Source: Corallochytrium limacisporum Hawaii
Lineage: Eukaryota; Protista; Pluriformea
Assembly (NCBI GenBank): GCA_002811645.1
Contig: PDIP01000076.1
Location: 1 to 45,338, forward strand
Length of the DNA stretch: 45,338 bases
Direction of reading: 5' to 3'
Shown here: positions 114-29,021 of the stretch, one piece after another
Numbering within the stretch: position 1 is the first letter of the stretch
How the letters are laid out: each line of letters opens with the position of its first letter
Program-made: the position numbers and the translations under genes
The notes under the pieces: model-generated
Database searches by the model: none
Seen by the model: only the letters and a program-made list of their open reading frames with translations
What the model was told of the DNA's origin: nothing

Positions 114-132
114 TGTGTGTGTGTGAGAGAGA

Positions 133-179
<47 letters not shown>

Positions 180-245: not shown

Positions 246-600
246 CGATGGTTTGGGTGCGCGGCGGGCGGGGCAAAGAGCGATCGATCTCTCCCTTTTC
301 CTCCTTTTTCGTCTTTTTGGTTGCAAAAAGGGGGTTCCCTGAGAAAATAAACTATAACACACACACCACACCACACACATGCATGTACACACGACACCGG
401 ACATCGACACGGAGGGCACTTGTGTGACAACACAACATTCCTGATGGTGATGATGATGATGGGCCTTGATGCCCAACACACTCCCCTCCCCCCGGGGGCG
501 CGGCGGCGGCGCCGGTTTTTGCGTTTCCAAACCACCGCCCCTTTCTTTTTTTTTTCCTTTGGGCCATCGCTCTCAAAGCCCCGCGGGCCGAGATCGCATC

Positions 601-603
<3 letters not shown>

Positions 604-651
<48 letters not shown>
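604..651. repeat. (CT)n microsatellite
   Basis: About 22 uninterrupted CT/TC units followed by CACA. Confidence 0.95.
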
Positions 652-653
<2 letters not shown>

Positions 654-1241: not shown

Positions 1242-1458
1242 AAAAAGAAAAAAAAAGGAAAAGGGAGAGGAGAGAGAGAGAGAGAGAGAGTGAAAGAAAA
1301 GGAGGGCCAAAACAAAAAAAAAGGAAAAAGAAGGGAGAAAAAGCCAAAAATGGGCCCTGTGTTTTTTTTTTTATTTTTGGGTGGTGGTGGTGTTTGGTGA
1401 GATAGAGAGAGAGAGAGCGAGAGCCAGAGCCAGAGCCAGAGACACAGAGAGAGAGAGA
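1242..1458. repeat. Purine-rich low-complexity tract with (GA)n and (GAGCCA)3
   Basis: A-runs; (GA)n at about 1270-1290 and 1399-1458; GAGCCA x3 at 1421-1438. Confidence 0.85.
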
Positions 1459-1778
1459 TTCTCTTCCCTTTTTTTTTCCTTGTTGGGTGTGTGTGTCCCG
1501 TCCTTGTGTGGTGGTGGTGGAGGAGTTTGTTTCCTTTCGTAATTGGTGTGGTTGGTCACGGCTCCCAACGGAGGTGTCTAGGTACTTTGGGGACACGGGG
1601 ACATGTCTGCGCAGCGTGCCGTGTGGGACAGGACGACAAAAGGGTTGAGAAAAGACATCACGGTGTCACGCATAGCGAACTAAGCGCCATTGCACTTTAA
1701 CGCACTTTGACACAACACACATCACATACATCTTTCGTATTTCTTCTTTTGTAGGACAGCGCAAAATAACTTTGTTGA

Positions 1779-2765
1779 ATGTCACCCAACGACTTTAACA
1801 ACGGCTTCTACAACAAGAACTCGGGTAACGTAGGAGGCAGCAACCTAAGCAACAAGGCCAACACTAACAACACTTTCGGTATCAACCCCAGCCCTCAACA
1901 CATCAGTATGGATCCTGCCAACACCTGGGGAGTCTCCAACCAGGGCACCGCTGCCCCGGGAACAGAGGGCAGCTTTGCCAAAACTCTGCAAGAGATCGAG
2001 GAACGGTCCGAGGAAATTTCCAAGGCCCTTCGCAAGGTCCTGCCCCACATTGGCCGCATTTTGGTTACCTCCACGTTCCTCGACGACGGTCTGCGCATGA
2101 TCTTCCAGTGGAATGAACAGATGAAATATCTCACCAAACAATTTTGGGGCTTTTCCACCCTGGCCGCAATCTTTATCGTTATTAACATGATCGTTCAATT
2201 GGGTGCCACCGGCATGATTGTGGCTCGCTACCAGCTCACTATCGCTGCCATTGCCCTGGCCGGTATCGTCGTGATCCAGACCCTGACTTACACTGCCCTG
2301 TGGGATGCAGGCTTCTTCCTGAAGTCGATGTCTGTGCTCGGTGGCCTGGTCCTCATCGTGGCCCAGGACAATCAAAACATCCAGCAGAAGTTCACCGGTG
2401 CCCTGACCACGGACGCGGACAAGAAGCCCGTGAACAACTTGCTGCTGGCGGGACGGCTGATGATTGTGCTGCTGGTTCTGTGCAGCTATGAGATGTTCCT
2501 GCCAGTGTACATTGTGTCCCTGGCACTGGCTCTGTGCATTGTGGCGGGATTCCAGACCAAGTCTGCCTCTCTCGTGCTCATGGTCATTCTGTTCCTGTAC
2601 GACATTGTTGTGAACCAGTTCTGGACCGTCAGGTCCACTACCTACAGGTACGATCTGCTCAAGTACGACTTCTTCCAGCTGCTGTCCGTGGTGGGTGCCC
2701 TGGCGCTGCTGACAGCCATGGGTGCTGGTGACATCAGCGTGGACAAGCGCAAGAAGGACTTCTAA
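1779..2765 (+). CDS. SURF4: SURF4/Erv29 ER cargo receptor
   Basis: LPHIGRILVTSTFLDDGLRMIFQWNEQ, FFLKSMSVLGGLVL, LLLAGRLMIV and KYDFFQLLSVVGALALL..GAGDISVD match SURF4-family motifs. C-terminal KKDF is a di-lysine ER-retrieval signal. The Asn-rich N-terminal extension means the true start could be the downstream Met (MDPANTWG). Confidence 0.95.
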   Translation: MSPNDFNNGFYNKNSGNVGGSNLSNKANTNNTFGINPSPQHISMDPANTWGVSNQGTAAPGTEGSFAKTLQEIEERSEEISKALRKVLPHIGRILVTSTFLDDGLRMIFQWNEQMKYLTKQFWGFSTLAAIFIVINMIVQLGATGMIVARYQLTIAAIALAGIVVIQTLTYTALWDAGFFLKSMSVLGGLVLIVAQDNQNIQQKFTGALTTDADKKPVNNLLLAGRLMIVLLVLCSYEMFLPVYIVSLALALCIVAGFQTKSASLVLMVILFLYDIVVNQFWTVRSTTYRYDLLKYDFFQLLSVVGALALLTAMGAGDISVDKRKKDF

Positions 2766-3311
2766 AGCTGTGAATCGCCCCAGCAAGCACCTATACAGGG
2801 AAGAGCCAACCGGGAAAAAGGGGGGGGGAGGGGAAAGGGGAACGAACAAACCACTCGCATTTCATTTCATCCAACATGTTAGTCCATGCATTTCAAGGCC
2901 CCTGTCTCCCTGTCACTACTGGAATGCACGGTAAATGGATGTCCGCACATCCATTTTCTTTTCTTTTTGTAGTAGAAAACTGCACCGCACACAACGCACG
3001 CAACGCACGCACGCACGCACAAGTGCCCAATACAGTCTACGATCACCACGCACTCGGAGCCATCAGCAAAATGTTGACGCATTATGGTGAAGATTCATTT
3101 GGAGATCTTGTAGAAACTGATCGAGTTCACTTTGAGGATGTTATCTAGCTAGTTGTTGGTTTCTTTAATGAATTGATTTCTTACATGTGTCTCTCATGAC
3201 GGATTGTTGATGCTGATGGTCATGAAGGTTGCTGGGAGGTTATGGTACAGGGTGCAATTTCCCACACTTTGTTCTGGTTTGGTTGTTTGTTTCTTCGTCG
3301 TTTGGCATGCA

Positions 3312-5747
3312 TCAGGCCAGGAACGGATCGACCTCGTACGGATCGGTGAGCTTCAAGTCGGCCTCCATGGTCGCGTACACTGGTTTGTGATCGCTCAGCT
3401 TGACATCAAACGCAGTGTTGTAGTCTACTAGGCGCATGCTCGCCACCGCGTCGGCATCTTCATCCTTCACATCGAAATCGAGGTCCAGTGGTTTGCCCAT
3501 CATGGCTCTGCCGAACGGATCCGTCTCATCCCTTGGACAGCGAAACAGAATACGGTCAGTGTACGAGGGAATGCGACACTTCTTGGACGTGTCGTAGATG
3601 TCCGTGCCATTGTCAAACTTGTAGGTGGGCGCGAAGAGCAATTCTCCCTCCTGGAATCCTTGGAGGACACGTCCCCGTCGCATTTCCTTGCGGAGCTGGT
3701 CGTTCGCATGCAGGACTTCAAGCATGCCGTTGCGAATGACAGCATCGACAATCTTCCGGCTGCCATCGACACGGTAATTCATGTCGCCGAACCAGCAAAC
3801 CCGGTCGAAGCGCGTGGTAAGGTCCGCACGCAGAGACGCAGGCATCAGATCGCCTGTCACTGACTCGCGAATCACGCCTGGAAGTTCTCCTGCCGGATTT
3901 GCTTCCGTGGAATCTGTGCTCTGTGACATAGGCGACACCAGAAGCGGAGCTCCGGACTTTGAACGGTGCTGCGGCGGCTCGGTCGACTTGCTCCTACTGA
4001 GTCGACGCATAAAGCCGGACAGACGGGTCGGGCTGCGGGTTGGGCTCACACGGGACTCGCGAGGATTCGCTGTAGGTCTGTCCTCGTCTTTGTCGTCACC
4101 TGTGGGTTGCTGTTGGATACTTGGACTCGATGAACGTGTCGCGAGCGAAAAGTTGCTGCGAAGGCTGCTTCGGCTCAATATCAGATCAGCAGAACCTTGC
4201 GATGCCACACTCCGCAGCGGAACGGTTGAAGCGGGATTCGGCGTCCCGCTGCGCTGTGCTAGGCTGGTTGGCACAACCTTGTCCTCGGAAACTGCACAAG
4301 CCCGACAGATCTTTTCGATGCAAAGCCGGCGCTTCGTCACTTCGCCCTGGTGCGCGGGCAGGTGGCAGTTCACAAAGACGAATGAGGTGTCCGCGAGGCG
4401 GAAACTGATGGCTGTACCACCCTTGTTCCCAACCACACCACCGATACCGGTTGCAACCGAAGTGGATTGGACATTGTAGATGAATGGTACGAGCTCCTTT
4501 CGCACAAAGACAATCATGTACAACCAGTACATGCGCTGCATGCGAATTGCCGTGTACCGTCCATGGCTGGCGAAGACGTCTGCGAACGTCAGAGTGGTCT
4601 TCTTGTGCATCTGTCCATTCCCTTCTTGGGCACTGTCTCTCCCAGTAACATCACCATTATCCTGCGGTTGTGGTTGCTGCCATTCATTGTCGCTACCGCA
4701 CATCATGGACCGTAGCACACGATCCCAATGCTCCCAATGCTTGCTCTGCTCTTGCAGGCCGATCGCCACAATGTCATGCCCATCTCTAACACCGACAGAG
4801 CCCAACAGGGCAACCATTTGTTCAACATCATGTTCGGGTGGCATCTGTTCATTCGTGTTGAAAGTCACGCAGTGAACCTGGATGTTGCGGTCGGGATAGA
4901 GCTCAAGCAGTGTGCCCCACTGCGGATGTGCATCACGCAAGGTCCGGTCTGGTGCTAGGAGCAGACGATCCTCGACAAACTTCAAAGCCTCCTCCACCGA
5001 TTCGTCCTCCTCCTCACGCCCAATCAAAAGAGTTTCGCCCGTATCCGCGTCATAGGGGTGCATGGATTTAGACACGGCTTTCACCTCACTGTCATCGTCC
5101 TCGTCCTCCACCGAAGGCTCTTGCTTGGGCGCCGCCTTGTCGACGACCATCCCCAAGGAAGACCGGTCCCGAGCGGGAGATTTACGGCGGTGTATGTAAC
5201 TATGGCTTCGTCGGGGCTGGTGGAGATGCCTGTCGTCTGCCAGTGGGAAGTACGTGTGGTCGTTCTCCGAACTGATCTGGACCATACGGCGCGTACCACT
5301 GTCCCTGCTCAAGCGCAGTCTATCGAGCGCACCCATAGAAGAATGCTGCTGGTTGAGGTCAGTGGAACTGCGGTGCGACAGGAGCGACAGATCCACTCGG
5401 GACCTGGCCGTCTCTGCAGCGTGCAATAGTGCATTACTCAGCTTGAGGGCTTTGTTAATGTTCAGACTGAATTCCGTTGTTCCGTCCTGGTCCCTCTCAC
5501 GACCCCGATCATTGTCTGGGTCTCCATGGTCTTCTTCATCCTCTACGTGTTCTAATATACCGGTGTCCGTGGATCCCGTCGAGGAACATGATATGGTGTC
5601 AGCTTCTTTGCTCTGTGGCTTCTCCTCATTAGTTTGTGCTTCTCCACATGGCGTGGCCAAGCCGGCAGCCTTCTGTTGCTGTACTAGAACCTCCAAATCA
5701 CGACCACATATTCCCTTGTGGGCAAGCTGTTTAAGTAAAGGCAGCAT
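3312..5747 (-). CDS. INPP5E: Inositol polyphosphate 5-phosphatase, INPP5E-like
   Basis: 5-phosphatase motifs GNKGG, FVNCHL, WFGDMNYR, PTYKFD, PSYTDRIL and SDHKPV. INPP5E-type context YPDRNIQV, DLTTRFD and DQLRKEMRRG. Start placed at the first ATG (5747); the ORF track begins at a TTG at 5789. Confidence 0.88.
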   Translation of the reverse strand: MLPLLKQLAHKGICGRDLEVLVQQQKAAGLATPCGEAQTNEEKPQSKEADTISCSSTGSTDTGILEHVEDEEDHGDPDNDRGRERDQDGTTEFSLNINKALKLSNALLHAAETARSRVDLSLLSHRSSTDLNQQHSSMGALDRLRLSRDSGTRRMVQISSENDHTYFPLADDRHLHQPRRSHSYIHRRKSPARDRSSLGMVVDKAAPKQEPSVEDEDDDSEVKAVSKSMHPYDADTGETLLIGREEEDESVEEALKFVEDRLLLAPDRTLRDAHPQWGTLLELYPDRNIQVHCVTFNTNEQMPPEHDVEQMVALLGSVGVRDGHDIVAIGLQEQSKHWEHWDRVLRSMMCGSDNEWQQPQPQDNGDVTGRDSAQEGNGQMHKKTTLTFADVFASHGRYTAIRMQRMYWLYMIVFVRKELVPFIYNVQSTSVATGIGGVVGNKGGTAISFRLADTSFVFVNCHLPAHQGEVTKRRLCIEKICRACAVSEDKVVPTSLAQRSGTPNPASTVPLRSVASQGSADLILSRSSLRSNFSLATRSSSPSIQQQPTGDDKDEDRPTANPRESRVSPTRSPTRLSGFMRRLSRSKSTEPPQHRSKSGAPLLVSPMSQSTDSTEANPAGELPGVIRESVTGDLMPASLRADLTTRFDRVCWFGDMNYRVDGSRKIVDAVIRNGMLEVLHANDQLRKEMRRGRVLQGFQEGELLFAPTYKFDNGTDIYDTSKKCRIPSYTDRILFRCPRDETDPFGRAMMGKPLDLDFDVKDEDADAVASMRLVDYNTAFDVKLSDHKPVYATMEADLKLTDPYEVDPFLA

Positions 5748-14221: not shown

Positions 14222-16126
14222 ATGCCAGACTCATATGAATTCACCCCCCGTAATTCTGCGACACCGCTCTTCCGGGACTTGACGATTCCCCTTGAAAAGA
14301 AGCGGCAGTGGCTGCACTATCTGTACGTCAGTCACGCCTTTTCAGCCTTTGGGAATCGCCTGTTCGAATTTGCGGTGCCCATCATGCTGGCTGTAGCTGA
14401 CATCAGCCGCAGTTCCGGCGACAGCGGCGGAGGCGACCTGACCTCCGTCGCGCTGTTTAGCATCGGTATCACTCTAACCCGGACATTATTTGCCGCCAAA
14501 ATCGGGGCCCTTACGGACCGTTGGCAACACCATCACCGCGTTAGGGCTGCTGGCTACCTAATCGCCGTCGATAACGGCCTGGTCATAATTGTGGCTGTCC
14601 TGATCTGGCTCCGATGCGTATCTACCACTCCTGACAGCTTGATGTCTTGGGTTATGCTCGCTGCGGCAGTGCTTATGGCCTGTTGCCAGACTCTGAGCGG
14701 AGTCGGCGGCTCCATCCTTGTCGAAAAAAACTGGGTCCGTAGCATCTGCCACGCAACCGCCACCTCAGACATGGACGACGACTCCAGTGAAGACCAGCAG
14801 CAAGGAAATATTGGAACGGGCAGAAGGGGATCAGAATTGTCGGACGAGGCCAAGGCCATGGTGCTTCTGTCCGAGGCCAATTCGGTGATGAGACGCATCG
14901 ATCTGACCTGCAAGTTCAGCGCACCGGTCCTTGTTGGTGTCATGGACGCCGTCAGTGACAATCCGGCCGCGCAAGTGGCCATTATAGCTATCCTGCTCGT
15001 GGCGTGGAATGTTGTCACGGGCCTTCCCGAGTTTCTTTTGCTGCGCAGACAGCAGGCTCTACAACGAAAGGAACAGACTCGTATCCTGCGTCACGGGCCG
15101 ACAGCGCCCGCAGCGGATGCCATCCCACCCTTGACACTGGCCGGCCAGTTTGCAGTCCAAGACAGAGCATACGAAGAGCACTCTGACCTGCGCTTGACAG
15201 CGGACAGTGTCCCCGAGGAAGATAATCTCGAAGATGAAGTTGATTACAATCAGCGTCACGACGACTATTACGCCCGATTACAGCTTCAACATGGTGATGA
15301 GGATGACCATGACGAAGAAACAACAGACAACGAATGGAAGAAGGAAAGCAACACGTTCACTGTCGTGTTTGTGGAGAACCTACACATTACCCTTAGTGTC
15401 GTTGGACTGGGATGTCTGTACTTTACGGTGCTGTCCTATTCCGCAATTATGCTGGGAGCGCTGGCAGCCCGTGGCGTCGGCGTGACGGTAATGGCTGTTT
15501 GTCGTGCACTCGCGTCCATGGTCGGCCTGAGTAGCACTTTTGTATTCACATGGCTCCGGCAGACCCAGTCGAACACGAATCACTCCAACGGTGAGATTGA
15601 TAAGGACCAGTATTGCTTGATCAAGCCAGCGTGGCGCGTAGCCATGTTGGGTGTCTGTTCGCAGTGGTTCAGTCTTCTGTTGGGTCTCTGGGGGATCTTT
15701 GTGTTCTTTGATGACGATTACCAGAACCAGCCTTCCGATGGAAGTAGCGTAGGTGCCTGGGGCATGCCTGCGCCCATCTGGGCCTTGGTCCTGCTAAACC
15801 TGGGAGTCATTGCGAGCCGCTGGGGTCTGTGGACCTTTGACCTTGGCGTCCTGCAAATGGTACAAGAAGGCGCGCCGGATGTCGTCCAGGGCCGTCTTAT
15901 GGGCGTCCAGGAGAGCGTCAATGCCTTCTTTGAATTGCTCATGGCAATGTTAGTGCTCGTGGTCTTTCCATCGAGCTCGGACTTCCCCGCACTCTCGGTG
16001 CTTTCGATGGTGGGCGTGACGATGTCGCTGGTACTCCATGCGGTGCAGGGCGTGGTGAACTTCGCACGGGCCCGCATTAGTCGCCGTTATTCGAGGCTGT
16101 CAAACCAGAACCTTGATGTACTTTAG
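14222..16126 (+). CDS. SLC40A1: Ferroportin family (SLC40/IREG) metal exporter
   Basis: LYVSHAFSAFGNRLFEFAV, ILVEKNWV, NSVMRRIDL.CK..AP, LYFTVLS, SRWGLWTFDL and GVQESVN match the ferroportin family. Multiple TM helices and a central acidic loop. Confidence 0.92.
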   Translation: MPDSYEFTPRNSATPLFRDLTIPLEKKRQWLHYLYVSHAFSAFGNRLFEFAVPIMLAVADISRSSGDSGGGDLTSVALFSIGITLTRTLFAAKIGALTDRWQHHHRVRAAGYLIAVDNGLVIIVAVLIWLRCVSTTPDSLMSWVMLAAAVLMACCQTLSGVGGSILVEKNWVRSICHATATSDMDDDSSEDQQQGNIGTGRRGSELSDEAKAMVLLSEANSVMRRIDLTCKFSAPVLVGVMDAVSDNPAAQVAIIAILLVAWNVVTGLPEFLLLRRQQALQRKEQTRILRHGPTAPAADAIPPLTLAGQFAVQDRAYEEHSDLRLTADSVPEEDNLEDEVDYNQRHDDYYARLQLQHGDEDDHDEETTDNEWKKESNTFTVVFVENLHITLSVVGLGCLYFTVLSYSAIMLGALAARGVGVTVMAVCRALASMVGLSSTFVFTWLRQTQSNTNHSNGEIDKDQYCLIKPAWRVAMLGVCSQWFSLLLGLWGIFVFFDDDYQNQPSDGSSVGAWGMPAPIWALVLLNLGVIASRWGLWTFDLGVLQMVQEGAPDVVQGRLMGVQESVNAFFELLMAMLVLVVFPSSSDFPALSVLSMVGVTMSLVLHAVQGVVNFARARISRRYSRLSNQNLDVL

Positions 16127-16234: not shown

Positions 16235-19200
16235 TCATAGTCCATCATGACCACTGGTCGGCAGATCTAGGCCCGTCATGATCTCGTCAACGTCCTGTAC
16301 CAAAGAGCCTTCCTCGAGCGCGGCGAGATCGGTGCGGGTGCCAAGCTCTGGGTTTGCCGCTGTTGGCAATGTCCGAGACGAGGTGGCCTTGCCGCCCGCC
16401 CCGCGTATGAACTGCTTCTGCCGCTGCCACCGATTTGTCGCACGCAGATTCATCTGCCGCATGGACAGGTCATTCACCACATGTAGTTCCTGGGCCATGA
16501 TGTTCAGGTATGTCCATACAAAGTTGTCCAGAACTAGATCGGAGAAGTCTTCAGGTGTCGCGGAGGCCTTGGCCAGATTCTCCAGCTCCCTCCTGGACGC
16601 AAGGCGCAGCTTCGACCGCTCCGATTCGTTTACATTATCCTCACCTTTATCAAATTTGCCGACTCCGTTTGGCTCTTCTTCAAGTACCGCAGCCATCGCG
16701 CGAACACCTTTGGAGCGGATACCGGGGACGTCGTCCTGTTGTTGCTGCTCTTGCGGGTCACCATCGCTATTCTCGTCCTGCTCTTGCGCATCATCGTGAT
16801 CGTCATTGTCACCCCGATCCTGGTCCTTCTCCAGAGACGCGAGGTACGCCAAACGGCGCGCACGCTTTCCCGGAGAAATGCGCTTCGAACGACGGGGCTG
16901 TGGCACCGCTGCTCTGCCGTCGCCGGTACCTTTTTCATCGTCGTCATTCCATCCGTCGGCTGGTGTCTTCCGTTTATGACCTGATGACAACCGAGGCGCA
17001 TTACCTTCAATGACAGTCTTCCGCTTCTTCGACGGTGACTTTTCCTCGTCGCAGACCTCCGGCTCATAGTCCTCACTATCCTTGTCCACGCTGTCTTCAT
17101 CTGCCAAGTCTTCGCTGTCGTCATCACTGTTCAGATCGGCAGCGGTGCGCATGGGTTTCTTTTTCTTTGGTTTCGGTTTCTGCTCCTGAAGTTGATGTGG
17201 TACCACTGCGGGACGTCCCGACGGCAATTGCGTCCCTTGGTTTCCTGCCGCCGACTTGTCAACAGGGTCGTCATCATCATCCTCTCCGAGCACAATGTGT
17301 TGCGTGTCCGCATCAGTGGACGAAGTGTTGTGCAGAACAGGCGGTGAGCAAGCAAGCCGCGCTTTGTCCGTATCCCTCGGCGTCGTGGTTGTGTTCGCGA
17401 CCTCTGACGTGGACGGTACCTGTCCCTCGGGCCCGGTGCTGTGGCCTCCGGCGCTGGACGAGGCGGCCGTGGGTGTCTTCTGCAGAGGACATGGTGTGTC
17501 CCCAACGGACAACAACGGCATTCCTGCCAATAGACGGCGTCCGGTCGCGTGCAACGGAAGCAGTGGCGTGCTCAGGATGCCTCCGTTGCTGTTCTTGGGC
17601 TTTTCACTCTCATCGGTGACGTTGTCCTTCGTGGTGGTCGTCGGACTGATTCTGCTGCGATTGCCGCCCTTGCTAGAGGGCGAAACAGCGCTGGTCCGGG
17701 CCACGCCCAGCCAGGAGAGTGCCTTGGTGAAGTAGCCGAGGTAGCCCTCCTGCGACTTCTCCTGCGACTCTTCTTCCTCTTCGTCTGGCCTTTGGTCGCT
17801 CCCTTGGTGATCGACATCGCCATCATCATCTTCCTCACTTTGCTGTCCCGAATCGTCATTCTTCCCCCGATACAGACCTACTTCGTCGGGGTAGCTGTTG
17901 TGGGGCAGACTAGCGGTTCGTTTCTTGGAGCCGGACTCTGTGGTCGGGTCGCAGAGATGGTGCCTCGTGTTGGGTCGCGAGACTTTATCACGACTCCCTT
18001 CATTTTCGTCCACAGTGTCGAGACTCACTGCCAGAGTGTATTCTGGAGACACTTGCGACTGTTTGGTGTTCTCCTTGTCTTGACTAGCCTCATTGCTCCG
18101 TGATTTGGAGCGAGATTTCTTAGCGATTGACAGGTTTTCTGCGGATTTGCTTTGGCTATTTTGCAGACCAAAGATGACCGAACTCGATGTGTTCCGAACC
18201 GGCGTCAGTTCCCGAAGCGCTGGGGGTTCGGGAGTGTCGTCCATGAGGCGCTGGGCAGTGTTCTGGCTGCTCTTCGAAGCTTCAGGAGTCTTGATCCCTG
18301 CGTTCTCAACCGGTCTTCGCTGCTGCGCACGGGCTGGTGTCGACGTAAAACTATCAATGCTCTGCATCGACTGCACTTCATTCTGTTGAATTCCGTCGAA
18401 GTCAAGGCTCATTTCCACGCTAATGTTGGCAACTGGTTGGGATGCAACGCTGTCCACTGGGCTGCCCAATTTGCCTTGAGCCACAATCATCCGTGGAGTG
18501 ATTGCCCCAGGATGCTCCGGTGCTGTTCCTTCTGCTTCCACCTGTGCAGGTACCGACGGTTGCACAGAAACCGACTGTGTACCTTCAGAAGGATTAGTTA
18601 CAGGGCTTGCACCTTTGTGTGCAGGCAGAGGTGGCGGAAGCATCTTCTTCAGACGCTCCTGGATACCGGGGGGGAAGACAGGGTTCGTTGCGGAGACAGC
18701 TTGGGTCTCCTGGAATACGCCATGTCTTTCAGCGAGCGATTCCTCGTAGTCAAGATTGAGATCGTCACCCATGGGGCCCATAAGGGCTTGTGTCTCGCTC
18801 AGGCCCAGTTCAGGTGCACGCTGTGACGAACGGTGAGCTGGGGATCCGGCCATGGGACCGGAAACTGCGGGCGCTTCGGTGAAGCTGCGCTCCGCACACT
18901 GTTGTTGCAGTTGCGGCTGCGGCGGCGACGGCGACTGCGACTGTGGCTGATTGGCCTGTTGGGCTGGTGTCGTCGACTCGACGGAGGTACGCTGGTTCGA
19001 CGCTTCGGTGACGTCTTCTGGAGTGGGATCCGATCGCGAATGATCGGCCTCCTCCACAGTGTTCTGCTCCAGAGATCGCGCCTTCGTCAGTTCGGTTGCC
19101 GTCGCCTGTTTCTGCTGCTGCTGTTGCTGTCGTGTCCGACTACCAAATCCTTTACGGTCCTCAAGTATTTGAATGCGCTCCCTCATCCAAGGATCGTCGT

Positions 19201-19816
19201 AGCCGCGCTCCAAGGCCCCCCCGTGCCAAAGTTTAAGCTTCTCCAGATCATTTTCATACTCTGTGAGATCGTGTTCGATTTCCCAGTTCTTCTTTGTTTC
19301 CATAGGGGCTAGTCGATACAGATGCATGACCATCCACATGCTCTTGGTTTTGGCCTGCAGAACCTCTTCAGCGGCGTCAGAGCTCACTATGATCTGCCCT
19401 TGTCGAATCAAATCTAGGCGCTTCTGGACCTCGCTATCGAGGATCACGTCCATGGGATCGCCAATGGCCAGACAATTCTCCGATCCGATAAAGTCGAAGC
19501 CATGAATCTCTAACAAGATTTTGTGGGCACCGTCCGGATATTGCAGTTTAGCTTTAGTGATGAGAACCAGGCCGCCTTTTAGATCTCGAAGATCGTTGCT
19601 ACAGTGCTCTTGAGTCCGTAGCTTCTTTATGCATGGGGTTGTGAACTCCGTTTCGATGTGATAGTTACCATCGCTTACCTGACCCCGCACAGCTTGCAAC
19701 GAAGTCACAGTGTCTGCATCCTGGCTCACTTGAATAATCTGTGCCGTAACGCCCTGTTTCACTTTCCCGTTCAAGACGGTGTCTCTGATCCACTGTTCCT
19801 TCAAGAATAGTGCCAT
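16235..19816 (-). CDS. ACD: TPP1/Est3/Tpz1-like telomere protein (N-terminal OB fold, long disordered tail)
   Basis: The first ~135 aa (QWIRDTVL, AQIIQV, QVSDGNYHI, GGLVLI, F.FIGSE, GDP, DSEVQKRL) follow the TPP1 OB pattern (human PWIRELIL, GQLLEV, LVSDGTHSV, DLDVQKKL, recalled). The rest is low complexity with NLS-like basic clusters. Confidence 0.75.
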   Translation of the reverse strand: MALFLKEQWIRDTVLNGKVKQGVTAQIIQVSQDADTVTSLQAVRGQVSDGNYHIETEFTTPCIKKLRTQEHCSNDLRDLKGGLVLITKAKLQYPDGAHKILLEIHGFDFIGSENCLAIGDPMDVILDSEVQKRLDLIRQGQIIVSSDAAEEVLQAKTKSMWMVMHLYRLAPMETKKNWEIEHDLTEYENDLEKLKLWHGGALERGYDDPWMRERIQILEDRKGFGSRTRQQQQQQKQATATELTKARSLEQNTVEEADHSRSDPTPEDVTEASNQRTSVESTTPAQQANQPQSQSPSPPQPQLQQQCAERSFTEAPAVSGPMAGSPAHRSSQRAPELGLSETQALMGPMGDDLNLDYEESLAERHGVFQETQAVSATNPVFPPGIQERLKKMLPPPLPAHKGASPVTNPSEGTQSVSVQPSVPAQVEAEGTAPEHPGAITPRMIVAQGKLGSPVDSVASQPVANISVEMSLDFDGIQQNEVQSMQSIDSFTSTPARAQQRRPVENAGIKTPEASKSSQNTAQRLMDDTPEPPALRELTPVRNTSSSVIFGLQNSQSKSAENLSIAKKSRSKSRSNEASQDKENTKQSQVSPEYTLAVSLDTVDENEGSRDKVSRPNTRHHLCDPTTESGSKKRTASLPHNSYPDEVGLYRGKNDDSGQQSEEDDDGDVDHQGSDQRPDEEEEESQEKSQEGYLGYFTKALSWLGVARTSAVSPSSKGGNRSRISPTTTTKDNVTDESEKPKNSNGGILSTPLLPLHATGRRLLAGMPLLSVGDTPCPLQKTPTAASSSAGGHSTGPEGQVPSTSEVANTTTTPRDTDKARLACSPPVLHNTSSTDADTQHIVLGEDDDDDPVDKSAAGNQGTQLPSGRPAVVPHQLQEQKPKPKKKKPMRTAADLNSDDDSEDLADEDSVDKDSEDYEPEVCDEEKSPSKKRKTVIEGNAPRLSSGHKRKTPADGWNDDDEKGTGDGRAAVPQPRRSKRISPGKRARRLAYLASLEKDQDRGDNDDHDDAQEQDENSDGDPQEQQQQDDVPGIRSKGVRAMAAVLEEEPNGVGKFDKGEDNVNESERSKLRLASRRELENLAKASATPEDFSDLVLDNFVWTYLNIMAQELHVVNDLSMRQMNLRATNRWQRQKQFIRGAGGKATSSRTLPTAANPELGTRTDLAALEEGSLVQDVDEIMTGLDLPTSGHDGL

Positions 19817-20156: not shown

Positions 20157-23100
20157 TTAATTTTTGAACTTCTTGACCCGCCTTCGGTGCTTCAGGCAGC
20201 CAGTTTTGGTGGTGAGATGCTCCGTCCAGCCACCTTCCGTCCCGTTGAGCATGTCCATGCACAGCGGACAACGATTAGTGGCCTGCTTCTCCGTGGTGAG
20301 CGGGCAGCATTTCAATTTGGAGTGCTCCACGAGTTCAGATTTCAACATGGTTTTTTTGCAGCGCTTGCAGCGGTCCATGTCCTTGGCCTTGTCGCACTCC
20401 GTGCGCCGGTGGTCGTTCAGGGCACTCACCTCGACAATCTGTTTACAGTGAGAACACGACGTAAGCATTAGGCAACTCTTCCAGTAGTGCACGTCCAGCT
20501 GATCGGGTGTAAACGAGTCGTCCGTCTCGCCACAGAAGATGCACATCTTATCCATGTTTGGAGTGTCCACGGATTCTTCCTCGGTATGTGGTGGCACCGG
20601 TGTCTTGGTTTCCTTCTCGAACCTGCCAAGAAGTTCACCATAAGCCTTCTTGTCCGGAGCCGATGTCCTTGACCCAGCCGCGACCATGTGCTCTTCCGGA
20701 AGCGCCTGCAGCTCTTTCATCTGCCCTTCCAACTGTTTGAGCTGTTCGTCCTTGCCGAAAGAGCTCGCCTGGTCACCTGCACGCAATTTCGATTGCGTGG
20801 CCCCAAAGCGGGCCTTGTCCAGGCTCTCTATAAGCTTTGGCGGCAGATTGAGCAAGTACTGATCAATCTCCCCTTGGCCTAGCACGCCTTGCAGAGCAGC
20901 ACAGGCCATCACCGCCGCATCGCGCGCCTTGCCGTCTGCATGCTCAAGGCCTACTCGTACAGTGGGCATCACCGTGGGACCCGGAAGAAGTTGTGCGTTT
21001 GCCGTTAGCCCCTTTGCAAAGATCGCGATTAGCTCCATACGGCGCATCATGTGTCGTCCTTGGAGCTTACGTTTTGGCAGCTTGCACACTTCGTACACCA
21101 ATTCGTGGCTGCACTGATCCTTGTTGAAGACGTTAACCAGACCGTCGCGGATCTTGTCTCCAACACGGGCATTTGATTCACCAATCTTTGATAGCAGGAC
21201 TTCGCAGAGATCGTGCACTGCGGGTCCCACGTCGCCATGTCCCAGATTATTGTTCATGATGTACGAAGTGAGCAGTACCTGGATGCAATCCATGGTCAAT
21301 GTCACTACGTTGATGACTGGGGACTCCACACCACGGCTCAGGAGCTTCGCGGTCTGCCGTAATACGCTGCTAGGTGTATGATCGCTGTCACCGGTTGCGC
21401 TGAGAACCCCTCGAACCTCCGCAATACCTTCATCCTTATACTTAAATTTTTTGCTGAGCACTTTTCGCACCGTAAGCTCGCCAAAAACGTTGATGGCATC
21501 CACCATCTCGCGCCGGACTTTTGCAGCTAACAATTCAGGCTCATTTTCGGCCGGGGGTACGTCAGCGGCGCCATCACCAGCACCACCATTGCCGGTATTA
21601 AAGGGATCGTCTTGGCCACCCTTCTTGGCAAGTGCTGGCAATGGTCGATCATCCGCGGGCACGACCACCGGTACGACCACTGGCGCATCGCCACGGGGCG
21701 GGGTGCGGGGTAGGCAGGGCTGGGATTGCACTGGTACATTCTGCGGGCCAGCAGAGCTGACCGCATGCAACATTGGAGGCATGTCGGTAGTCTCTTGGGG
21801 GTCAACTTTGTCTGCACTTAAAGACGGATCGGGTGGCACTCCCATTTTTCTCGCCAGCGTCGGCAATGGCCGGTCGTCCGGGTCTGACTGGTGGGTCAGT
21901 TGCGGGGAAATATTTCGTGAGATTCCACTGGTATTACTTTTGTCAATCACAGTGTCATTGTTCGCATAATGGGCTTCATGCACATCCTGAACTTCGCATG
22001 GCTCCTGAGTGGTGGTGCGGTGCGTGAGCTGACCGTCAGCCGGAGGGGGTGGAGCGGGACGATTGATTATGTCTGGGATGATGTCCGTCATTGAAATGGT
22101 TGGGAACTGGTGGCCTTGGTGTTGCGTTTGCTGTGGAGCAGGCACAGTCTTCGCACCCATCACAGTTGGCGCGTCTGATCCCAATTCGGTCATTATGTAA
22201 TCATCTATCTTGCGTCGGATCATGTCAATCTTCTGCTTGTATTCCTTCGCAAGGTCAAAGTCCTCCAATTGCACAGCTTTCTTTTTTTGCGATTCCAACT
22301 TGGCAAGCTCCACACCGGCCGTCTGAAGAGTTTCCATAACCTGCTTGCACTGCTTCGCGTCCTCAAATCTTTCTTCCGCCACCGCCTGGGCCTTGCGGTC
22401 GACCAATTTGCAAATGACTTCAGCAGTCCTTGGATCCTGCAGCATCGCAAACGTCATGTCATCTAAGGGATCAAACTGCATTGGTTTGTTGGGTCCCAAT
22501 TCTTCTTGCACGATTTCTTGACCAACCGGATCGCCAACAAGTCCCTTCAGTGTGGGTAGCTGCGACAGTTTCAGCCCGGACTGTAAAAGCACAGCTGAGT
22601 TCGCCTGGTCCGGTACCGCAGTAATTCCAGCTGCATCTGCAACCGCCTTCATAACCGCCCCAGATTGTGCAGGTTGGCCGATAATGTTCAGCGCCACAAT
22701 GCCGACTTGATTGTACAAATTGTACTGGTTGATATGGCTGCCCTGGATCACGATCTTCACAAACCGCCCCACGGTGTCGATGTGGATGGACTTCAGTTCC
22801 CGTGCCCGGTACTGAGCTTCCGTGTTGGACCCGAAAGAAACATGGCCCAGTCTCGTCCAGATGGTCTCCATTTCGGATTTATCTTCGATTTTTTTCTGAT
22901 CTTTCCCGCGATCATTGACTGCTGGAGATGCCGCCCGAACTTGGCTCAGGTTTGTCACATTGCCAATGTAGAGTTCCACGCGGTGAGCAATCTTGTACTG
23001 ATGGCTTAGAATCTGAATCTTGCGTATCCGGCAGAGTCCTTCTTTCAACGCCAAGACAATTTCCTGCGGATAGTGACAAAATCGGCCGGTTTGCCATCCC

Positions 23101-23198
23101 CGGGTGTCTGGTGTGTGTTGCTCAACCTGTTCTGGTCCATGCTCGTAGTCATTGCTGCTGGCGTATACAGCCTTGAAGGTTAGCTTCCTAGGCGCCAT
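20157..23198 (-). CDS. CEP104: Centrosomal/ciliary tip protein CEP104 (FAP256)
   Basis: N-terminal GWQTGRFCHYPQEIVL, RIRKIQILSHQYKIA, ARELKSIHID and NLYNQVGIVALNIIG. Coiled coil with AVAEERFEDAK and AVQLEDFDLAK, a HEAT/TOG-like region, and a C-terminal Zn-finger array (CIFCGE...HYWKSC...RCPLC). Confidence 0.95.
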   Translation of the reverse strand: MAPRKLTFKAVYASSNDYEHGPEQVEQHTPDTRGWQTGRFCHYPQEIVLALKEGLCRIRKIQILSHQYKIAHRVELYIGNVTNLSQVRAASPAVNDRGKDQKKIEDKSEMETIWTRLGHVSFGSNTEAQYRARELKSIHIDTVGRFVKIVIQGSHINQYNLYNQVGIVALNIIGQPAQSGAVMKAVADAAGITAVPDQANSAVLLQSGLKLSQLPTLKGLVGDPVGQEIVQEELGPNKPMQFDPLDDMTFAMLQDPRTAEVICKLVDRKAQAVAEERFEDAKQCKQVMETLQTAGVELAKLESQKKKAVQLEDFDLAKEYKQKIDMIRRKIDDYIMTELGSDAPTVMGAKTVPAPQQTQHQGHQFPTISMTDIIPDIINRPAPPPPADGQLTHRTTTQEPCEVQDVHEAHYANNDTVIDKSNTSGISRNISPQLTHQSDPDDRPLPTLARKMGVPPDPSLSADKVDPQETTDMPPMLHAVSSAGPQNVPVQSQPCLPRTPPRGDAPVVVPVVVPADDRPLPALAKKGGQDDPFNTGNGGAGDGAADVPPAENEPELLAAKVRREMVDAINVFGELTVRKVLSKKFKYKDEGIAEVRGVLSATGDSDHTPSSVLRQTAKLLSRGVESPVINVVTLTMDCIQVLLTSYIMNNNLGHGDVGPAVHDLCEVLLSKIGESNARVGDKIRDGLVNVFNKDQCSHELVYEVCKLPKRKLQGRHMMRRMELIAIFAKGLTANAQLLPGPTVMPTVRVGLEHADGKARDAAVMACAALQGVLGQGEIDQYLLNLPPKLIESLDKARFGATQSKLRAGDQASSFGKDEQLKQLEGQMKELQALPEEHMVAAGSRTSAPDKKAYGELLGRFEKETKTPVPPHTEEESVDTPNMDKMCIFCGETDDSFTPDQLDVHYWKSCLMLTSCSHCKQIVEVSALNDHRRTECDKAKDMDRCKRCKKTMLKSELVEHSKLKCCPLTTEKQATNRCPLCMDMLNGTEGGWTEHLTTKTGCLKHRRRVKKFKN

Positions 23199-24323: not shown

Positions 24324-27300
24324 CTAAGCGTCAGGAATGCGGAAAAACCAGAAGGTCAAGGCCCCACAGGAAAGCAGTGCAAGGCAGGCCATAGCCAGTA
24401 CCAAAGGCCCTACGTCCAACAGTAAGTGCAGGACAACAGATATCCAAAAGAGCAGAATCACGGCAAGACATGCCAGGTTGTGCAAATCAAGAGATAGCTT
24501 GTGCACGATATGCAGGCGCTGTTGCTCATAGTCCACATTGTTGTCAAGGCGGGATAGCAGGCGCCAGCACACAAACCAGAGACCCACAAGGACACCCAAG
24601 GCAAGCAACAGCGGTACCATCATACCAATGATAATATAAGTGTGGTCGTGGATGTACACAGTGTCATTGACCACGGCGGTCGGGGACATGGCCACAGTCA
24701 AGACAACGGCAAAGACAATTGTCACTAGCCACACAGCTGCAATAACGACCATCATCTCGCCGGTCACTTGCGTCCACCGAGCTTGGCGGCGAGCGTATCG
24801 CGGCTTGCCACGCCAGAGGCTGCTTTTGCGGCGCAGCATGGCGTCTGGCTTTACCATGGTCGCAGACGTGGAAGAGGCGCACGCTGGTGGGATACTCAAC
24901 GGTGAAACGGGTACACTATCAGCCTCAGCGTACGACATTGTCGACGACGAGGATTCGGTGCTGTCGACCTCATGATGAGAAGGTTCGGGTGCGGTTGTAC
25001 GCAGCTCAGAAGGTAGCATGTAGATGTCGTCAGTCTCGCTCATGCCACTGGTCGGTTCGCTGTAGATGGGCTCTTGTTCGGCATCTGCACCGGCACCTGA
25101 TTCATCCGTCTTCGATCGTGGAGTGACCACTGCCTCAGACCAGGCTGGGGTTGCGAGTTGCGGTGTACGACTCATACTCGACGTGTTGCGGTTCAGAGTG
25201 CGCCCAACCTCCAGGTCACGAAGTTCGCGAAGCTCCCGTGCAAAGTCGGTGATGTCCATGATCCTCTGGGTTGAGTGGCGCTGCTGCACAGTATCGACCT
25301 CGGTATACGTCGGGTCCATATTTATGACCAGGGAGCGCCGGCGGTATAGTGGCTTGTCTTCCCGCAGAGTGCCCGGCGTGTCAATGTTGGATGTGTGGCG
25401 GGACAGCGGCTTTGGCGCTTGTGCGCCCCGAGGAACCGTAGTTTGTGTGAGGGACGTGACACCACCGTTGGTCGACAGCGATCGCCCGGTCTTTCCTGTG
25501 GCCGTGGTGGAATGCACCTCCGGTACAGGCGTGAGGGCGGGCGATTCCAAAGCATGGTAGCTACTGCTCAACGGCGGTGGCGTCTGCGCAAGATTCATTT
25601 CGTCATCGTGGTCGACAACACTTAGTTCCCACTTCAACGCACGCATGAGGATGACACCGAGCACAGCGGACAAGCCACCGAAGACAAGCAAACTCAGTTG
25701 GAAGATTCCAGTAGTGACCAGAGCACTGGTTGTCGACGACACTGTGCCACTTGCCACTTGCACTCCAATGAAGAAAAACAAAGTCGCCAGCAGAAGCTCC
25801 AACACCCATAGTTGCCACTTGAGAACGGCCATAAAGCCAGCGTGGAAGAGGAAGACACCCCAGGTACCGGCCTTGGTCGCGGCCAGGGGTACTATCAGGC
25901 GGCCTACCGCCACCAAGAGAATCAGTACGCGCGCTACGGTAACAACACTGTCATCAGCGAACGAGTAGCCCTCTTGATATTTGGCGAACCGATTGTCATT
26001 GATACCGAACTCACTGTTGCTATCGCGATCAACTGGCACCCCGTCCTCAGGCCCACCTCCGACGCAACACTGCTGCGCGGAGCAGTCAAAGGAATCGCAG
26101 CGTGCGTTGAGCACGTCCAGAGCTTCCCAGAGAGCCGCATTACAATCATCGTCGTTACTGAAACCAGACCGCCGACAATTCTCAATCGGGTTCGCGAACT
26201 GCTCGCTGAAGACACAGCACAAAGATGGGAAGCAGTCCTGATCATCCACGGTAGAGCTGTCGTCAACACCACCACATCGTAGCTCCGAAGCACGCCCACC
26301 GGCAAACCCGATCGCTTGGCACTGCGCGTCAGTGCTAGCGTTGACTTCCTCACAGGAACGGTAACGTCCGCAGCACTCTGTCGCATTGCATTTCTCACTA
26401 CCACAAACAATGTCTGTGCCCTCGCCATCTCGTCCAGTGCCGTCCTCCACGACAAGGAACTCCTCCGAGTCGTTGTCTGTGGTTGCATTCGCGCCACGGG
26501 CACCACGATAAAAATCGTAACCCGCAGCCTGGCACTTGGCCGGAGTCCCGTACCTGGACGTGGAGCACCGGGCGTAGCGACCACAGCACTGTTCCGCGGT
26601 ACAAGGACCGCCTTCGCAAAGATCCATGACGTCCATTCGGACAAAATCTAGACCAGCAGCACGACAGTCGGCATTGTCGAGATACCCAGCATCTGTGCAT
26701 TCACTCGCACGTGCGCAACAGTCGTTGAGGCCACAGTCACGGTCAAGGTGGCATTCTGGCTGCTCTCGGACAAGATCAAAGCCTGCCGCTTGACACTGGC
26801 GGTCGTCTATAAGCCCCACGTCCGCACACGTCCGTAGCGCCTCGCAGCACGAGGCCGGTTCGCAGATCGTGGAGTCGCCGCACCCACGTTCTTCAGCAGC
26901 CTTGACGCGAGCGTAGCCCGCAGTGCGGCAAGTCGCATCGCTAAAGAATCCAGCGGTTTCGCAAGTCTGGAAACCAGCACAACAGTCTCCAGGAGTTGCA
27001 TCACGCATCTGCAGTCCGGCTTCGGGGTTGTTGAGGTAGTAGAGGCCACGCAATATACCAGCCTCTACACTATAGACATCGAAACCTTCCTCAACACACG
27101 CTGCGTCATCGACTAAGCCAATATCATTGCATGAAGCGTGGGAGGAACAGCACTCCGCCAGACTGCAGTCAAATTCGTCGCACGACTGCGCCCCGTCGAT
27201 GAAGTCCCCGAAACCTGCCTCTAGGCAGGCCTGCGCGGTGAGCCCAGCGGCATCGTCGCCACATGTTGGATAGAGACCGCAGCACGTCGCCACTGAGCAG

Positions 27301-29021
27301 TTTCCACCGCAGTCCTTGACATCATCGCCGACGAGGACGTAATTGTAGCCTAGATCAACACAGCTGCGGTCGTTCACAAGACCAAGGCTCTCGCAGGTGT
27401 CAAAGTTGCCACAACACTTTTCTTCCGTACAGTCACCGCCAGTGCATACACCTGTGTCCGGATCAATGGCGGGCGTATCGACATCAGTGCCATCGGATTT
27501 CATGGCCATGACGGCGAAGTCGTAGTCACGGGCGCGGCACTGAGCATCCGTTGTTAGGTCTAGATCATTGCAAGTGATGTAGTCAGCACAGCAGTGGTCC
27601 TTCACTGTGCAGTCCTCACGGGTCCCTTTGCCACAGTTGACAGCACCGACACCTTCCACGGCAAGTACGGAGTAGTCAAAACCAAGGTCTTGGCAACCCG
27701 CGTTGGTGGCAGCTGCTAGATCAGCACAACTTGCGTTCGCCTGACAGCAGTCCCGTGGACGGCAGTTGGTGCCCCCGCCGCAACGGTCGTTCACTCTGTC
27801 AAAGCCGAGCTGGCTGCATTTCGCATCGCTGGTCAGTCCGAGCGTCTCACACGACTCGAACACACCGCAGCAGTCGGCCACAGTGCAATCACTGCCTTCG
27901 CAGCCTGTCAGGCGTCCAGTGGCAAAGTCGTAGTATTTTTTTGGACTGATGGATATAGCCTGACACTCCGCGTCAGTGGTCAGATCAATGTCTGCGCAGG
28001 TTCGGTAGGCCTGGCAGCAGTCTTCAGCTCTACAGTCGCGGCCCTGACATGTCTTCGACGCAGCATTAGCCACGGCAAAGTCAAAGTTCAGAGCGCGACA
28101 GGCAGTGTCGCTAGCCAGATCGACCTCTGCACAGCTGCGGAAGGAACTGCAGCAGTCTGTTTCGATACAGGCGGCACCATCGCAGGCATTCCTTGGGTTT
28201 GCAGGTCCAATGTAGAATTCATGCCCCAAGACGTTGCACTGTGCGTCACTGGCAGCGCCCAGATCCACACAGGTCTTGTAGCTGCTGCAACACAGTTCAG
28301 GTGTGCAGTTGTCTCCAGATTCGCAGGCTACGGGACCAGGTCGCTTGAAATCGAAGCCATTTTGCTGGCATTGGGCATCATTTCCGGCACCCACGTCAGC
28401 ACAGGTCACAGTGCGGCCGCAGCATTTGGCAGCCTGCCGGCAGTCACCATCTCCTTCGCAATTGTTACCGGAGAAGAAGTCAAAACCGGCCAAGATACAT
28501 CCTGCGTCGGTACCAAAGCCGGCATCGGCGCAGGTTGCATAGAACTCACAACACCGGGGGATGCTGCAATCATTATTACCACAAGTGAAGTCTTGCTCGC
28601 CATCAGCCACACTGTAGTCGTAGCCGAGGGATCTGCATTCTCCATCTGTAGCTGCCCCAATGTCTCCGCATGCTAGGCGGTTTGTGCAGCAATCTGAGAC
28701 CAGACAGTCCCGATCTCCGCACGTGTATTCTGTATCACTGTTGTCCACGACCGTGTAGGCAAAACCTTCCTCCTGGCAATCTGCATCAGTCGTAATGTTC
28801 AAGTCCTCACAGGTGGTCCAGTTCTCACAGCAATCTTCCGCTGTACACGCGTCGCATGGTTCTGCTGCGGCACCTAAACTGTATTCATATCCGGCTTTTT
28901 GACAGTCGACATTGGTAGCGAAGCCAGCGTCAGCGCAGGGGTTCTGCGCGAAGGCCCCTGACGAGGCCATCCAACCCAGTACAGCACATGCTACGCCGCG
29001 GGGTATTGATATCCCCGCCAT
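24324..29021 (-). CDS. Cys-rich-repeat seven-transmembrane receptor-like protein (adhesion/class B GPCR-like)
   Basis: 1565-aa ORF. Signal peptide ending ..GAFA, 20 six-Cys repeats, three hydrophobic helices, a ~290-aa polar loop, then four more helices and a 5-aa tail. The CDS is secure; the family call is tentative. Confidence 0.85.
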   Translation of the reverse strand: MAGISIPRGVACAVLGWMASSGAFAQNPCADAGFATNVDCQKAGYEYSLGAAAEPCDACTAEDCCENWTTCEDLNITTDADCQEEGFAYTVVDNSDTEYTCGDRDCLVSDCCTNRLACGDIGAATDGECRSLGYDYSVADGEQDFTCGNNDCSIPRCCEFYATCADAGFGTDAGCILAGFDFFSGNNCEGDGDCRQAAKCCGRTVTCADVGAGNDAQCQQNGFDFKRPGPVACESGDNCTPELCCSSYKTCVDLGAASDAQCNVLGHEFYIGPANPRNACDGAACIETDCCSSFRSCAEVDLASDTACRALNFDFAVANAASKTCQGRDCRAEDCCQAYRTCADIDLTTDAECQAISISPKKYYDFATGRLTGCEGSDCTVADCCGVFESCETLGLTSDAKCSQLGFDRVNDRCGGGTNCRPRDCCQANASCADLAAATNAGCQDLGFDYSVLAVEGVGAVNCGKGTREDCTVKDHCCADYITCNDLDLTTDAQCRARDYDFAVMAMKSDGTDVDTPAIDPDTGVCTGGDCTEEKCCGNFDTCESLGLVNDRSCVDLGYNYVLVGDDVKDCGGNCSVATCCGLYPTCGDDAAGLTAQACLEAGFGDFIDGAQSCDEFDCSLAECCSSHASCNDIGLVDDAACVEEGFDVYSVEAGILRGLYYLNNPEAGLQMRDATPGDCCAGFQTCETAGFFSDATCRTAGYARVKAAEERGCGDSTICEPASCCEALRTCADVGLIDDRQCQAAGFDLVREQPECHLDRDCGLNDCCARASECTDAGYLDNADCRAAGLDFVRMDVMDLCEGGPCTAEQCCGRYARCSTSRYGTPAKCQAAGYDFYRGARGANATTDNDSEEFLVVEDGTGRDGEGTDIVCGSEKCNATECCGRYRSCEEVNASTDAQCQAIGFAGGRASELRCGGVDDSSTVDDQDCFPSLCCVFSEQFANPIENCRRSGFSNDDDCNAALWEALDVLNARCDSFDCSAQQCCVGGGPEDGVPVDRDSNSEFGINDNRFAKYQEGYSFADDSVVTVARVLILLVAVGRLIVPLAATKAGTWGVFLFHAGFMAVLKWQLWVLELLLATLFFFIGVQVASGTVSSTTSALVTTGIFQLSLLVFGGLSAVLGVILMRALKWELSVVDHDDEMNLAQTPPPLSSSYHALESPALTPVPEVHSTTATGKTGRSLSTNGGVTSLTQTTVPRGAQAPKPLSRHTSNIDTPGTLREDKPLYRRRSLVINMDPTYTEVDTVQQRHSTQRIMDITDFARELRELRDLEVGRTLNRNTSSMSRTPQLATPAWSEAVVTPRSKTDESGAGADAEQEPIYSEPTSGMSETDDIYMLPSELRTTAPEPSHHEVDSTESSSSTMSYAEADSVPVSPLSIPPACASSTSATMVKPDAMLRRKSSLWRGKPRYARRQARWTQVTGEMMVVIAAVWLVTIVFAVVLTVAMSPTAVVNDTVYIHDHTYIIIGMMVPLLLALGVLVGLWFVCWRLLSRLDNNVDYEQQRLHIVHKLSLDLHNLACLAVILLFWISVVLHLLLDVGPLVLAMACLALLSCGALTFWFFRIPDA
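26065..28945 (-). repeat. 20 tandem protein-level Cys repeats (about 41-70 aa each)
   Basis: Consensus [TS]C.D.G...D..C...G[FY]D[FY]..(var)..C.G..C....CC, counted 20 times in the translation. Confidence 0.92.

Follow-up and report, generated by a model that had tools for sequence, protein, structure and literature searches.

The window examined here is a 45,338-nt stretch of the Corallochytrium limacisporum Hawaii genome (assembly GCA_002811645.1, contig PDIP01000076.1, positions 1–45,338), and the subject of this work is a gene located on its minus strand that encodes a candidate seven-transmembrane (7TM) receptor with a large repeat ectodomain. The frame spanning from nucleotide 24324 to 29021 is a single open reading frame (ORF), open across all 1565 codons, and the gene model deposited in the EukProt public proteome predicts an identical protein sequence. 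Contigs from two small public sequencing runs of 2015, each of about 13 Mb and guessed to contain RNA, map colinearly over the gene with zero joints. As these contigs are colinear and joint-free and the EukProt model is exact, there is no sign of an intron or of mis-assembly, and a mis-assembled or spliced gene was ruled out on the same grounds. We conclude that this is a real, intron-free C. limacisporum gene for a surface protein that comprises an acidic six-Cys rod and a seven-helix membrane domain. The features of the gene are compiled in Table 1.

Table 1. Position of the 7TM receptor gene and of its parts in the window.
Feature	Residues	Window position	Strand	Basis or remark
Whole coding sequence, intron-free	1565 aa + stop	24324..29021	minus	ORF and gene model match
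Predicted signal peptide	1–25	28947..29021	minus	hydrophobic N-terminus and A-x-A-type site (AFAQ), read by eye
Ectodomain, 20 tandem six-Cys repeats	26–986	26064..28946	minus	splitting at each CC
Repeat 14	626–681	26979..27146	minus	Cys3 and Cys4 absent
Juxtamembrane linker, 39 aa	987–1025	25947..26063	minus	motif scan, TSP_3 scan
Transmembrane helices (TM) 1–3	1026–1127	25641..25946	minus	FFF at end of TM2; L-x-W-E just past TM3
Second intracellular loop (ICL2), 289 aa	1128–1416	24774..25640	minus	between TM3 and TM4
TM4–TM7	1417–1560	24342..24773	minus	W1431 in TM4; P1470 in TM5; second extracellular loop (ECL2) hairpin with NDT sequon; D-x-E-Q in third intracellular loop (ICL3)
Cytoplasmic tail and stop codon	five residues + stop	24324..24341	minus	

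The initial annotation of this sequence had placed a signal peptide, 20 six-Cys units in tandem and a short linker ahead of the membrane domain, and all three are present. When cut at each CC, the 20 units show the spacing C-x10-C-x(11-40)-C-x(4-8)-C-x4-CC, measure 41–71 aa and share a T-C-x-D-x-G-x-x-T-D-A-x-C-x3-G-F-D-type consensus. Over the at least 64 complete units found in the receptor family described below, the spacing of the cysteines hardly varies, and unit 14 of the window protein is the only one of them without Cys3 and Cys4; the joint loss of both suggests that these two residues pair with each other. The disulfide pattern predicted for a unit is Cys3–Cys4 together with two pairs that would cross from Cys1/Cys2 to Cys5/Cys6. 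A hidden Markov model built from the 20 units recovered 20 out of 20 in a six-frame search of the organism's own genome (24,109,830 bases in 286 contigs, used for all six-frame searches reported here), with E values from 2e-13 to 4e-8. Mean column identity among the units is about 24%, and Tandem Repeats Finder, run on the DNA, detected no DNA-level tandem repeat in the array. A reading of the array as a tandem repeat at the DNA level was thus ruled out, and the array must be old and its units diverged.

The ectodomain accounts for about two thirds of the protein. Up to residue 1020 it has an isoelectric point of 4.05, with 177 Asp and Glu among 994 residues (18%), and it includes 9 N-glycosylation sequons. 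The repeat had been annotated as an unrecognised unit and it remains so: a PDB sequence-profile search gave zero matches, the Pfam scan was also blank, and an ESM feature search performed with the repeats returned unnamed clusters only (0.83–0.86). As judged from its sequence, the six-Cys repeat appears to be a previously undescribed ectodomain unit. The absence of a GPS motif ahead of TM1, also part of the initial annotation, was borne out by a motif scan of the whole protein, in which neither a C.C.H or HLT-type motif nor a TxFAVLM-like stalk was found anywhere, and by Pfam, which gave no GAIN or GPS match over the same length. The linker, at 39 aa, is too short for a GAIN domain. A scan of this linker with TSP_3 (PF02412) gave no match; visual inspection shows a degenerate remnant of a TSP type-3-like motif that is present in paralogues (see below).

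Seven hydrophobic segments follow the linker, at residues 1026–46, 1063–89, 1101–27, 1417–41, 1460–83, 1513–35 and 1540–60. The inner loops contain 13 Lys and Arg residues and the three outer loops contain 0, when for ICL2 only the 15 residues flanking each helix are counted. From this 13:0 charge split, together with a signal peptide and an N-terminal part rich in disulfides, the predicted topology is a positive-inside arrangement of seven helices with the N-terminus outside, as had been annotated; the structural model described below likewise has seven helices. The central Trp of TM4 and the central Pro of TM5 that had been pointed out correspond to W1431 and P1470. ICL2 is rich in Ser, Thr and Pro (34%), includes 7 tyrosines and is mostly predicted to be disordered, with one amphipathic helix at about residues 1242–1280; a W..R..R..W stretch sits at its end, directly before TM4. 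The protein stops five residues beyond TM7, and the long Ser/Thr/Tyr-rich ICL2 probably stands in for the missing tail as a docking or regulatory region.

The same genome has three more genes whose 7TM domain is homologous; they are located on contigs C180, C71 and C252. The C180 gene (Clim_evm3s151) encodes a 981-aa protein with nine repeats and is matched by the window protein in BLASTP with an E value of 2e-4. The C71 gene encodes at least 1173 aa, ends at the contig edge and has 13 complete repeats followed by a TSP type-3-like motif. The C252 protein (about 644 aa), which the 7TM family profile matches with an E value of 8e-40, combines a different Cys-rich head, one repeat-like unit and, again, the TSP type-3-like motif. 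A further gene-model name carried among the paralogues is Clim_evm1s117. Hence two paralogues, those of C180 and C71, carry the six-Cys repeat of the window protein in tandem. The TSP type-3-like motif (D-x-D-x-D-G...D-N-C-P) is situated just before TM1 in the C71 and C252 proteins, where Pfam TSP_3 scores E 6e-5 and 7e-5, respectively, at 23 bits, just under the 25-bit cut-off; its positions are L010:1950-2120 (C71) and L017:3370-3540 (C252).

When the genome was searched in six frames with the repeat profile, the six-Cys repeat was found only in genes of the receptor family and in contig fragments that probably derive from one of them. As no other gene in the genome has it, the repeat is tied to this receptor family. 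Contig C119 (2-2227, minus strand) starts with a signal peptide and continues with repeats up to the contig edge, without a 7TM part; contig C139 (1444 bp) contains repeats throughout; and the C71 frame (3-3521) opens in the middle of a repeat with residues almost identical to the last ones of C119 and C139 and then proceeds to the 7TM domain. Because the ends of C119 and C139 overlap the start of C71 in sequence, the three are probably assembly-broken pieces of one giant paralogue with more than 35 repeats.

The 7TM domains of the family share several motifs. TM2 ends in FFF on its outer side. L-x-W-E right after TM3 and W-x4-R-x2-R-x3-4-W right before TM4 are both invariant in the four members, as are the D and E of a D-x-E-Q-R motif in ICL3. 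Three of the four have a Trp in TM4, and the domains also share (V/A)-P-L in TM5, including the conserved Pro, and an aromatic residue in TM6. The conserved residues of the bundle cluster on its cytoplasmic face. Two cysteines, one at the top of TM3 and the other in ECL2, sit where most GPCR (G protein-coupled receptor) classes have a disulfide. The three paralogues keep both and the window protein has neither, so that the pair is a family trait lost in the window copy. The window protein is also the sole nearly tail-less member and the one with the longest ICL2; the tails of the paralogues are longer.

We searched for relatives of this family by several sequence methods. Pfam hmmscan of the whole window protein at E ≤ 1 gave no meaningful family match, 7tm_2 (PF00002) included. 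All four family members were scanned whole and 7tm_2 matched none; for three of them the TM domain or its halves, scanned by themselves at E ≤ 10, gave no 7tm_2 match either, and the fourth was blank at E ≤ 0.001. Six-frame searches of the genome with 7tm_2 and with Dicty_CAR were blank, while the method used with 7tm_2 did find 7tm_3. The two class C (7tm_3) receptors detected in this way are located at C41:18001-18747 and C64:35852-36637, within frames that are open over 1092 and 1883 aa. An hhalign comparison of the family 7TM domain with these class C receptors gave a probability of 1.3%, and the best result of a PDB sequence-profile search with the 7TM domain, TM4-5 of 5-HT2C, was not significant (E 0.07).

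An exhaustive HMMER search of 1.84 billion representative proteins with the 7TM family profile returned only the proteins of Corallochytrium itself and one artefact. The latter, P0005, scored E 8e-18 over 13 stretches; it is a 1347-aa low-complexity, Leu/Phe/Pro/Ser-rich repeat 'protein' and was rejected as a compositional false positive. A word-index protein search found the query itself and one Clim fragment only, a weak negative, as it missed the known 981-aa paralogue. A literature search by the Clim gene names found no paper on these genes. The family, as found so far in these searches, would be restricted to C. limacisporum, in agreement with the annotation of the protein as a lineage-specific receptor in a unicellular relative of animals.

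To describe the fold of the membrane domain, an AlphaFold2 (AF2) model of residues 1016–1565 was built from a 4-sequence alignment. It shows seven long helices, with predicted local distance difference test (pLDDT) values of 70–90 in the TM segments, and a beta hairpin in ECL2. The model was compared with 48,161 representative chains by VIA-align. The adhesion receptors ADGRL3 (Z 13.9, root-mean-square deviation 3.6 Å over 180 residues), CD97 (Z 12.7, 4.1 Å, 188 residues) and ADGRV1 (Z 12.0, 3.9 Å, 206 residues) were among the best matches, together with the bitter-taste (class T) receptor TAS2R (Z 12.4, 5.0 Å, 218 residues). Among the matches listed, about 44 of 50 rows were GPCRs, of all classes; SMO and GABA-B reached Z 10.4–10.8, and the atypical lysosomal 7TM protein LYCHOS/GPR155 Z 10.8. 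When the Foldseek list was re-scored with VIA-align, 50 of 50 rows were GPCRs, led by TAS2R (Z 13.2) and NTSR1 (12.3), with 200–230 residues aligned and all seven helices spanned. In both VIA-align comparisons the aligned regions covered 180–230 residues within model residues 20–550. A shape search of the ESM Atlas was weak (best a GPR143-like structure, TM score 0.33/0.43), and the language-model neighbours of the 7TM domain include Dicty_CAR and 7tm_2 clusters (0.86–0.87).

From these comparisons we assign to the predicted 7TM bundle, with moderate confidence, a GPCR-type fold. The class of GPCR is another matter. The Z-scores of ADGRL3, CD97 and ADGRV1 (13.9, 12.7 and 12.0) stand against 12.4–13.2 for TAS2R and 12.3 for NTSR1, and a difference of about 1 Z on a model built from four sequences is a tie. 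Classes B2, T and A are thus tied in the modelled structure, and adhesion receptors are among the best matches and not separated from the rest. The annotation of the protein as an adhesion-GPCR-like 7TM receptor therefore holds in part: the predicted fold is GPCR-like and adhesion receptors rank among its best matches, but kinship with class B2 is not upheld, 7tm_2 being blank and the classes tied. As both the 7tm_2 signature and GAIN/GPS were tested and neither was found, we do not file the protein as an adhesion GPCR. It is adhesion-GPCR-like in layout, not a demonstrable member, and by sequence belongs to no known receptor class. Either this architecture arose separately or it diverged beyond recognition. 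On balance, we read the gene as one for a receptor of the plasma membrane that belongs to a small orphan family, which would join a GPCR-type fold to a new repeat ectodomain.

Several observations weigh against this reading. None of the sequence methods (Pfam, PDB profile, hhalign and the exhaustive search) ties the 7TM domain to any GPCR family. A Foldseek comparison of the TM bundle with the PDB, performed with the large loop kept, gave no row at E ≤ 0.001 (E ≥ 0.38), even if the weak rows were nearly all GPCRs. The AF2 model was built on four sequences and its overall pLDDT is 57; that of the C180 paralogue, which has a short loop, was too poor (pLDDT 56) to confirm it and had designed helical bundles as well as GPCRs among its matches. 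VIA-align itself warns that helical bundles can reach a Z of about 13 through arrangement alone, which is the level of the best matches here (13–14). The window protein has neither the TM3–ECL2 cysteines nor a cytoplasmic tail, and that the two public runs are RNA is a guess only. Finally, differences between strains are unevenly placed. Over the whole gene, run X2, which represents a second strain, shows 9 synonymous and 9 non-synonymous differences, 7 and 3 of which, respectively, are located in the ectodomain. The C-terminal half (ICL2 and TM4–7, window 24342-25640) shows 6 non-synonymous and 2 synonymous ones, and the changes include L1523Q (TM6), C1552F (TM7) and Y1364C (loop). The contrast between the ectodomain and the C-terminal half is not significant (p 0.15). 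The gene is real and under constraint, and its ectodomain is under purifying selection (7 to 3); the 7TM part of the window copy, by comparison, may be under relaxed constraint.

The larger share of non-synonymous differences in the C-terminal half fits with the loss of the Cys pair and leaves room for a different explanation, namely that the protein is a structural or adhesive, non-signalling coat protein whose seven helices are a mere anchor or a decaying receptor module. The window copy having lost both extracellular cysteines and its cytoplasmic tail, and an ectodomain that makes up most of the protein being the part kept under purifying selection (3 non-synonymous to 7 synonymous, as compared with 6 to 2), would fit such a protein. 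Nevertheless, L-x-W-E and W..R..R..W, like the D and E in the ICL3 motif, are still invariant in all four paralogues, an anchor of seven helices is costly where one helix suffices, and the polymorphism contrast falls short of significance. We consider a coat protein of this type unlikely.

That the protein is a true adhesion (class B2) GPCR, extremely diverged, which lost its GAIN domain and had its ectodomain replaced, appears improbable. The top structural matches being adhesion 7TMs (ADGRL3, CD97 and ADGRV1), a large repeat ectodomain being set directly ahead of TM1 and a TSP type-3-like motif, an element of metazoan matrix type, being present in two paralogues would all speak for such a receptor. 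However, 7tm_2 is unmatched in every family member, in three of them even at E ≤ 10, and is blank in the six-frame genome search that does find 7tm_3; GAIN and GPS are missing and the linker has just 39 aa; and receptors of classes T and A score equally within 1–2 Z. A central Pro in TM5 is, moreover, a trait of class A rather than of class B. Adhesion GPCRs are known in holozoans (PMC12716839), which is in favour of that origin.

A 7TM protein of a non-GPCR class (channel, transporter or cargo/trafficking receptor of the GOST/Wntless type) that mimics a GPCR in a shallow model is hardly probable either, for while the low depth of the AF2 model, Z-scores in the range that helical bundles attain by arrangement alone and the LYCHOS/GPR155 match (Z 10.8) would allow it, no transporter, channel, PAQR, microbial rhodopsin or GOST structure among the 48,161 chains outranked the GPCRs, and both the TM3–ECL2 Cys pair of the paralogues and the ECL2 hairpin are GPCR traits.

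The genes around it in the window are of ordinary eukaryotic kinds, and nothing evident links them to the receptor. They include, on the minus strand, a gene for the centrosomal/ciliary protein CEP104 (20157-23198) and one for a long protein that contains a TPP1 shelterin domain (16235-19816) and, on the plus strand, a gene for ferroportin (14222-16126). Farther away are found SURF4, an inositol-phosphatase-like protein, an aminotransferase, DNA polymerase subunit B and an ANTH/ENTH protein.

When the orphan receptor is set beside known systems, the closest in layout are the adhesion GPCRs (ADGRL3, CD97/ADGRE5, ADGRV1), which also occur in Holozoa, also carry a very long repeat ectodomain directly on the 7TM domain and count among the highest-scoring structures for the predicted bundle (Z 12.0–13.9). 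Unlike them, the window protein lacks a 7tm_2 signature, a GAIN/GPS module for autoproteolysis and a stalk resembling a tethered agonist; its repeat matches no adhesion-GPCR domain, its ICL2 is giant and a C-terminal tail is missing. Receptors of classes A and T (NTSR1, adrenergic receptors, TAS2R) align with Z 11–13.2 over 210–230 residues and share with the family the Trp of TM4, the Pro of TM5, the hairpin of ECL2 and, as kept in the paralogues, the TM3–ECL2 Cys pair, whereas the window protein shows no DRY, CWxP or NPxxY motif and no 7tm_1 match, and its ectodomain is huge. In Frizzled and class C receptors, a cysteine-rich extracellular module adjoins the 7TM domain and SMO and GABA-B align at Z 10.4–10.8, but Fz, NCD3G and ANF domains are absent from the window protein and hhalign gave the class C probability of 1.3% mentioned above.

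In being lineage-restricted 7TM proteins outside the GRAFS scheme that are known mainly by their fold, the recently named orphan GPCR families RSF, GPRch1-3 and Hi-GOLD from choanoflagellates and other protists (PMC12716839) also resemble the family studied here. RSF and GPRch3 consist of the 7TM domain alone or with short unstructured termini (PMC12716839), in contrast to the very large ectodomain of the window protein. In the search of the 1.84-billion-protein library, the family profile matched none of these families, nor the proteome of any organism other than Corallochytrium. Corallochytrean and ichthyosporean adhesion GPCRs have been described as having no extra ectodomains (PMC12716839); the Corallochytrium repeat-receptor family adds to this picture.

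As to how the orphan receptor may work, we propose that the 20 repeats form a long, very acidic, disulfide-stapled rod that would project from the cell and bind a surface, a matrix component, a cation or another cell; possible cation binding is suggested by the charge of the rod together with the TSP3-like motif of the paralogues. Ligand binding, or a pull on the rod, would pass via the short linker to the seven-helix bundle and could be read inside the cell at the L-x-W-E, W..R..R..W and D-x-E-Q-R surfaces. In the window copy, the 289-aa disordered ICL2 would replace the tail as the docking or regulatory region. The readout partner might be one of three G-alpha proteins or another partner. 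The Corallochytrium genome includes three full G-alpha genes, so that coupling of the receptor to a G protein is possible.

We tentatively put forward a broader proposal, to which we give less credence than to the receptor reading itself: Corallochytrium may have evolved an 'adhesion-receptor' layout independently, with a new GPCR-fold class without sequence relatives, three-disulfide acidic repeat rods of 9 to >35 units, a calcium-binding TSP3-like hinge, and signalling through ICL2 and not through the tail. Corallochytrium can be stably transfected (bioRxiv 10.1101/2020.11.12.379420), and tagging and deletion of these genes are therefore feasible in this organism. 7TM receptors with large ectodomains are counted among the tools of adhesion and signalling that predate animals. 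In the family described here, the earliest-branching holozoan lineage appears to build very long ectodomains on a GPCR-like bundle from parts that sequence profiles do not know. If the predicted fold and the surface location are true, this would be a case of convergent receptor architecture and would supply a new small repeat fold rich in disulfides.

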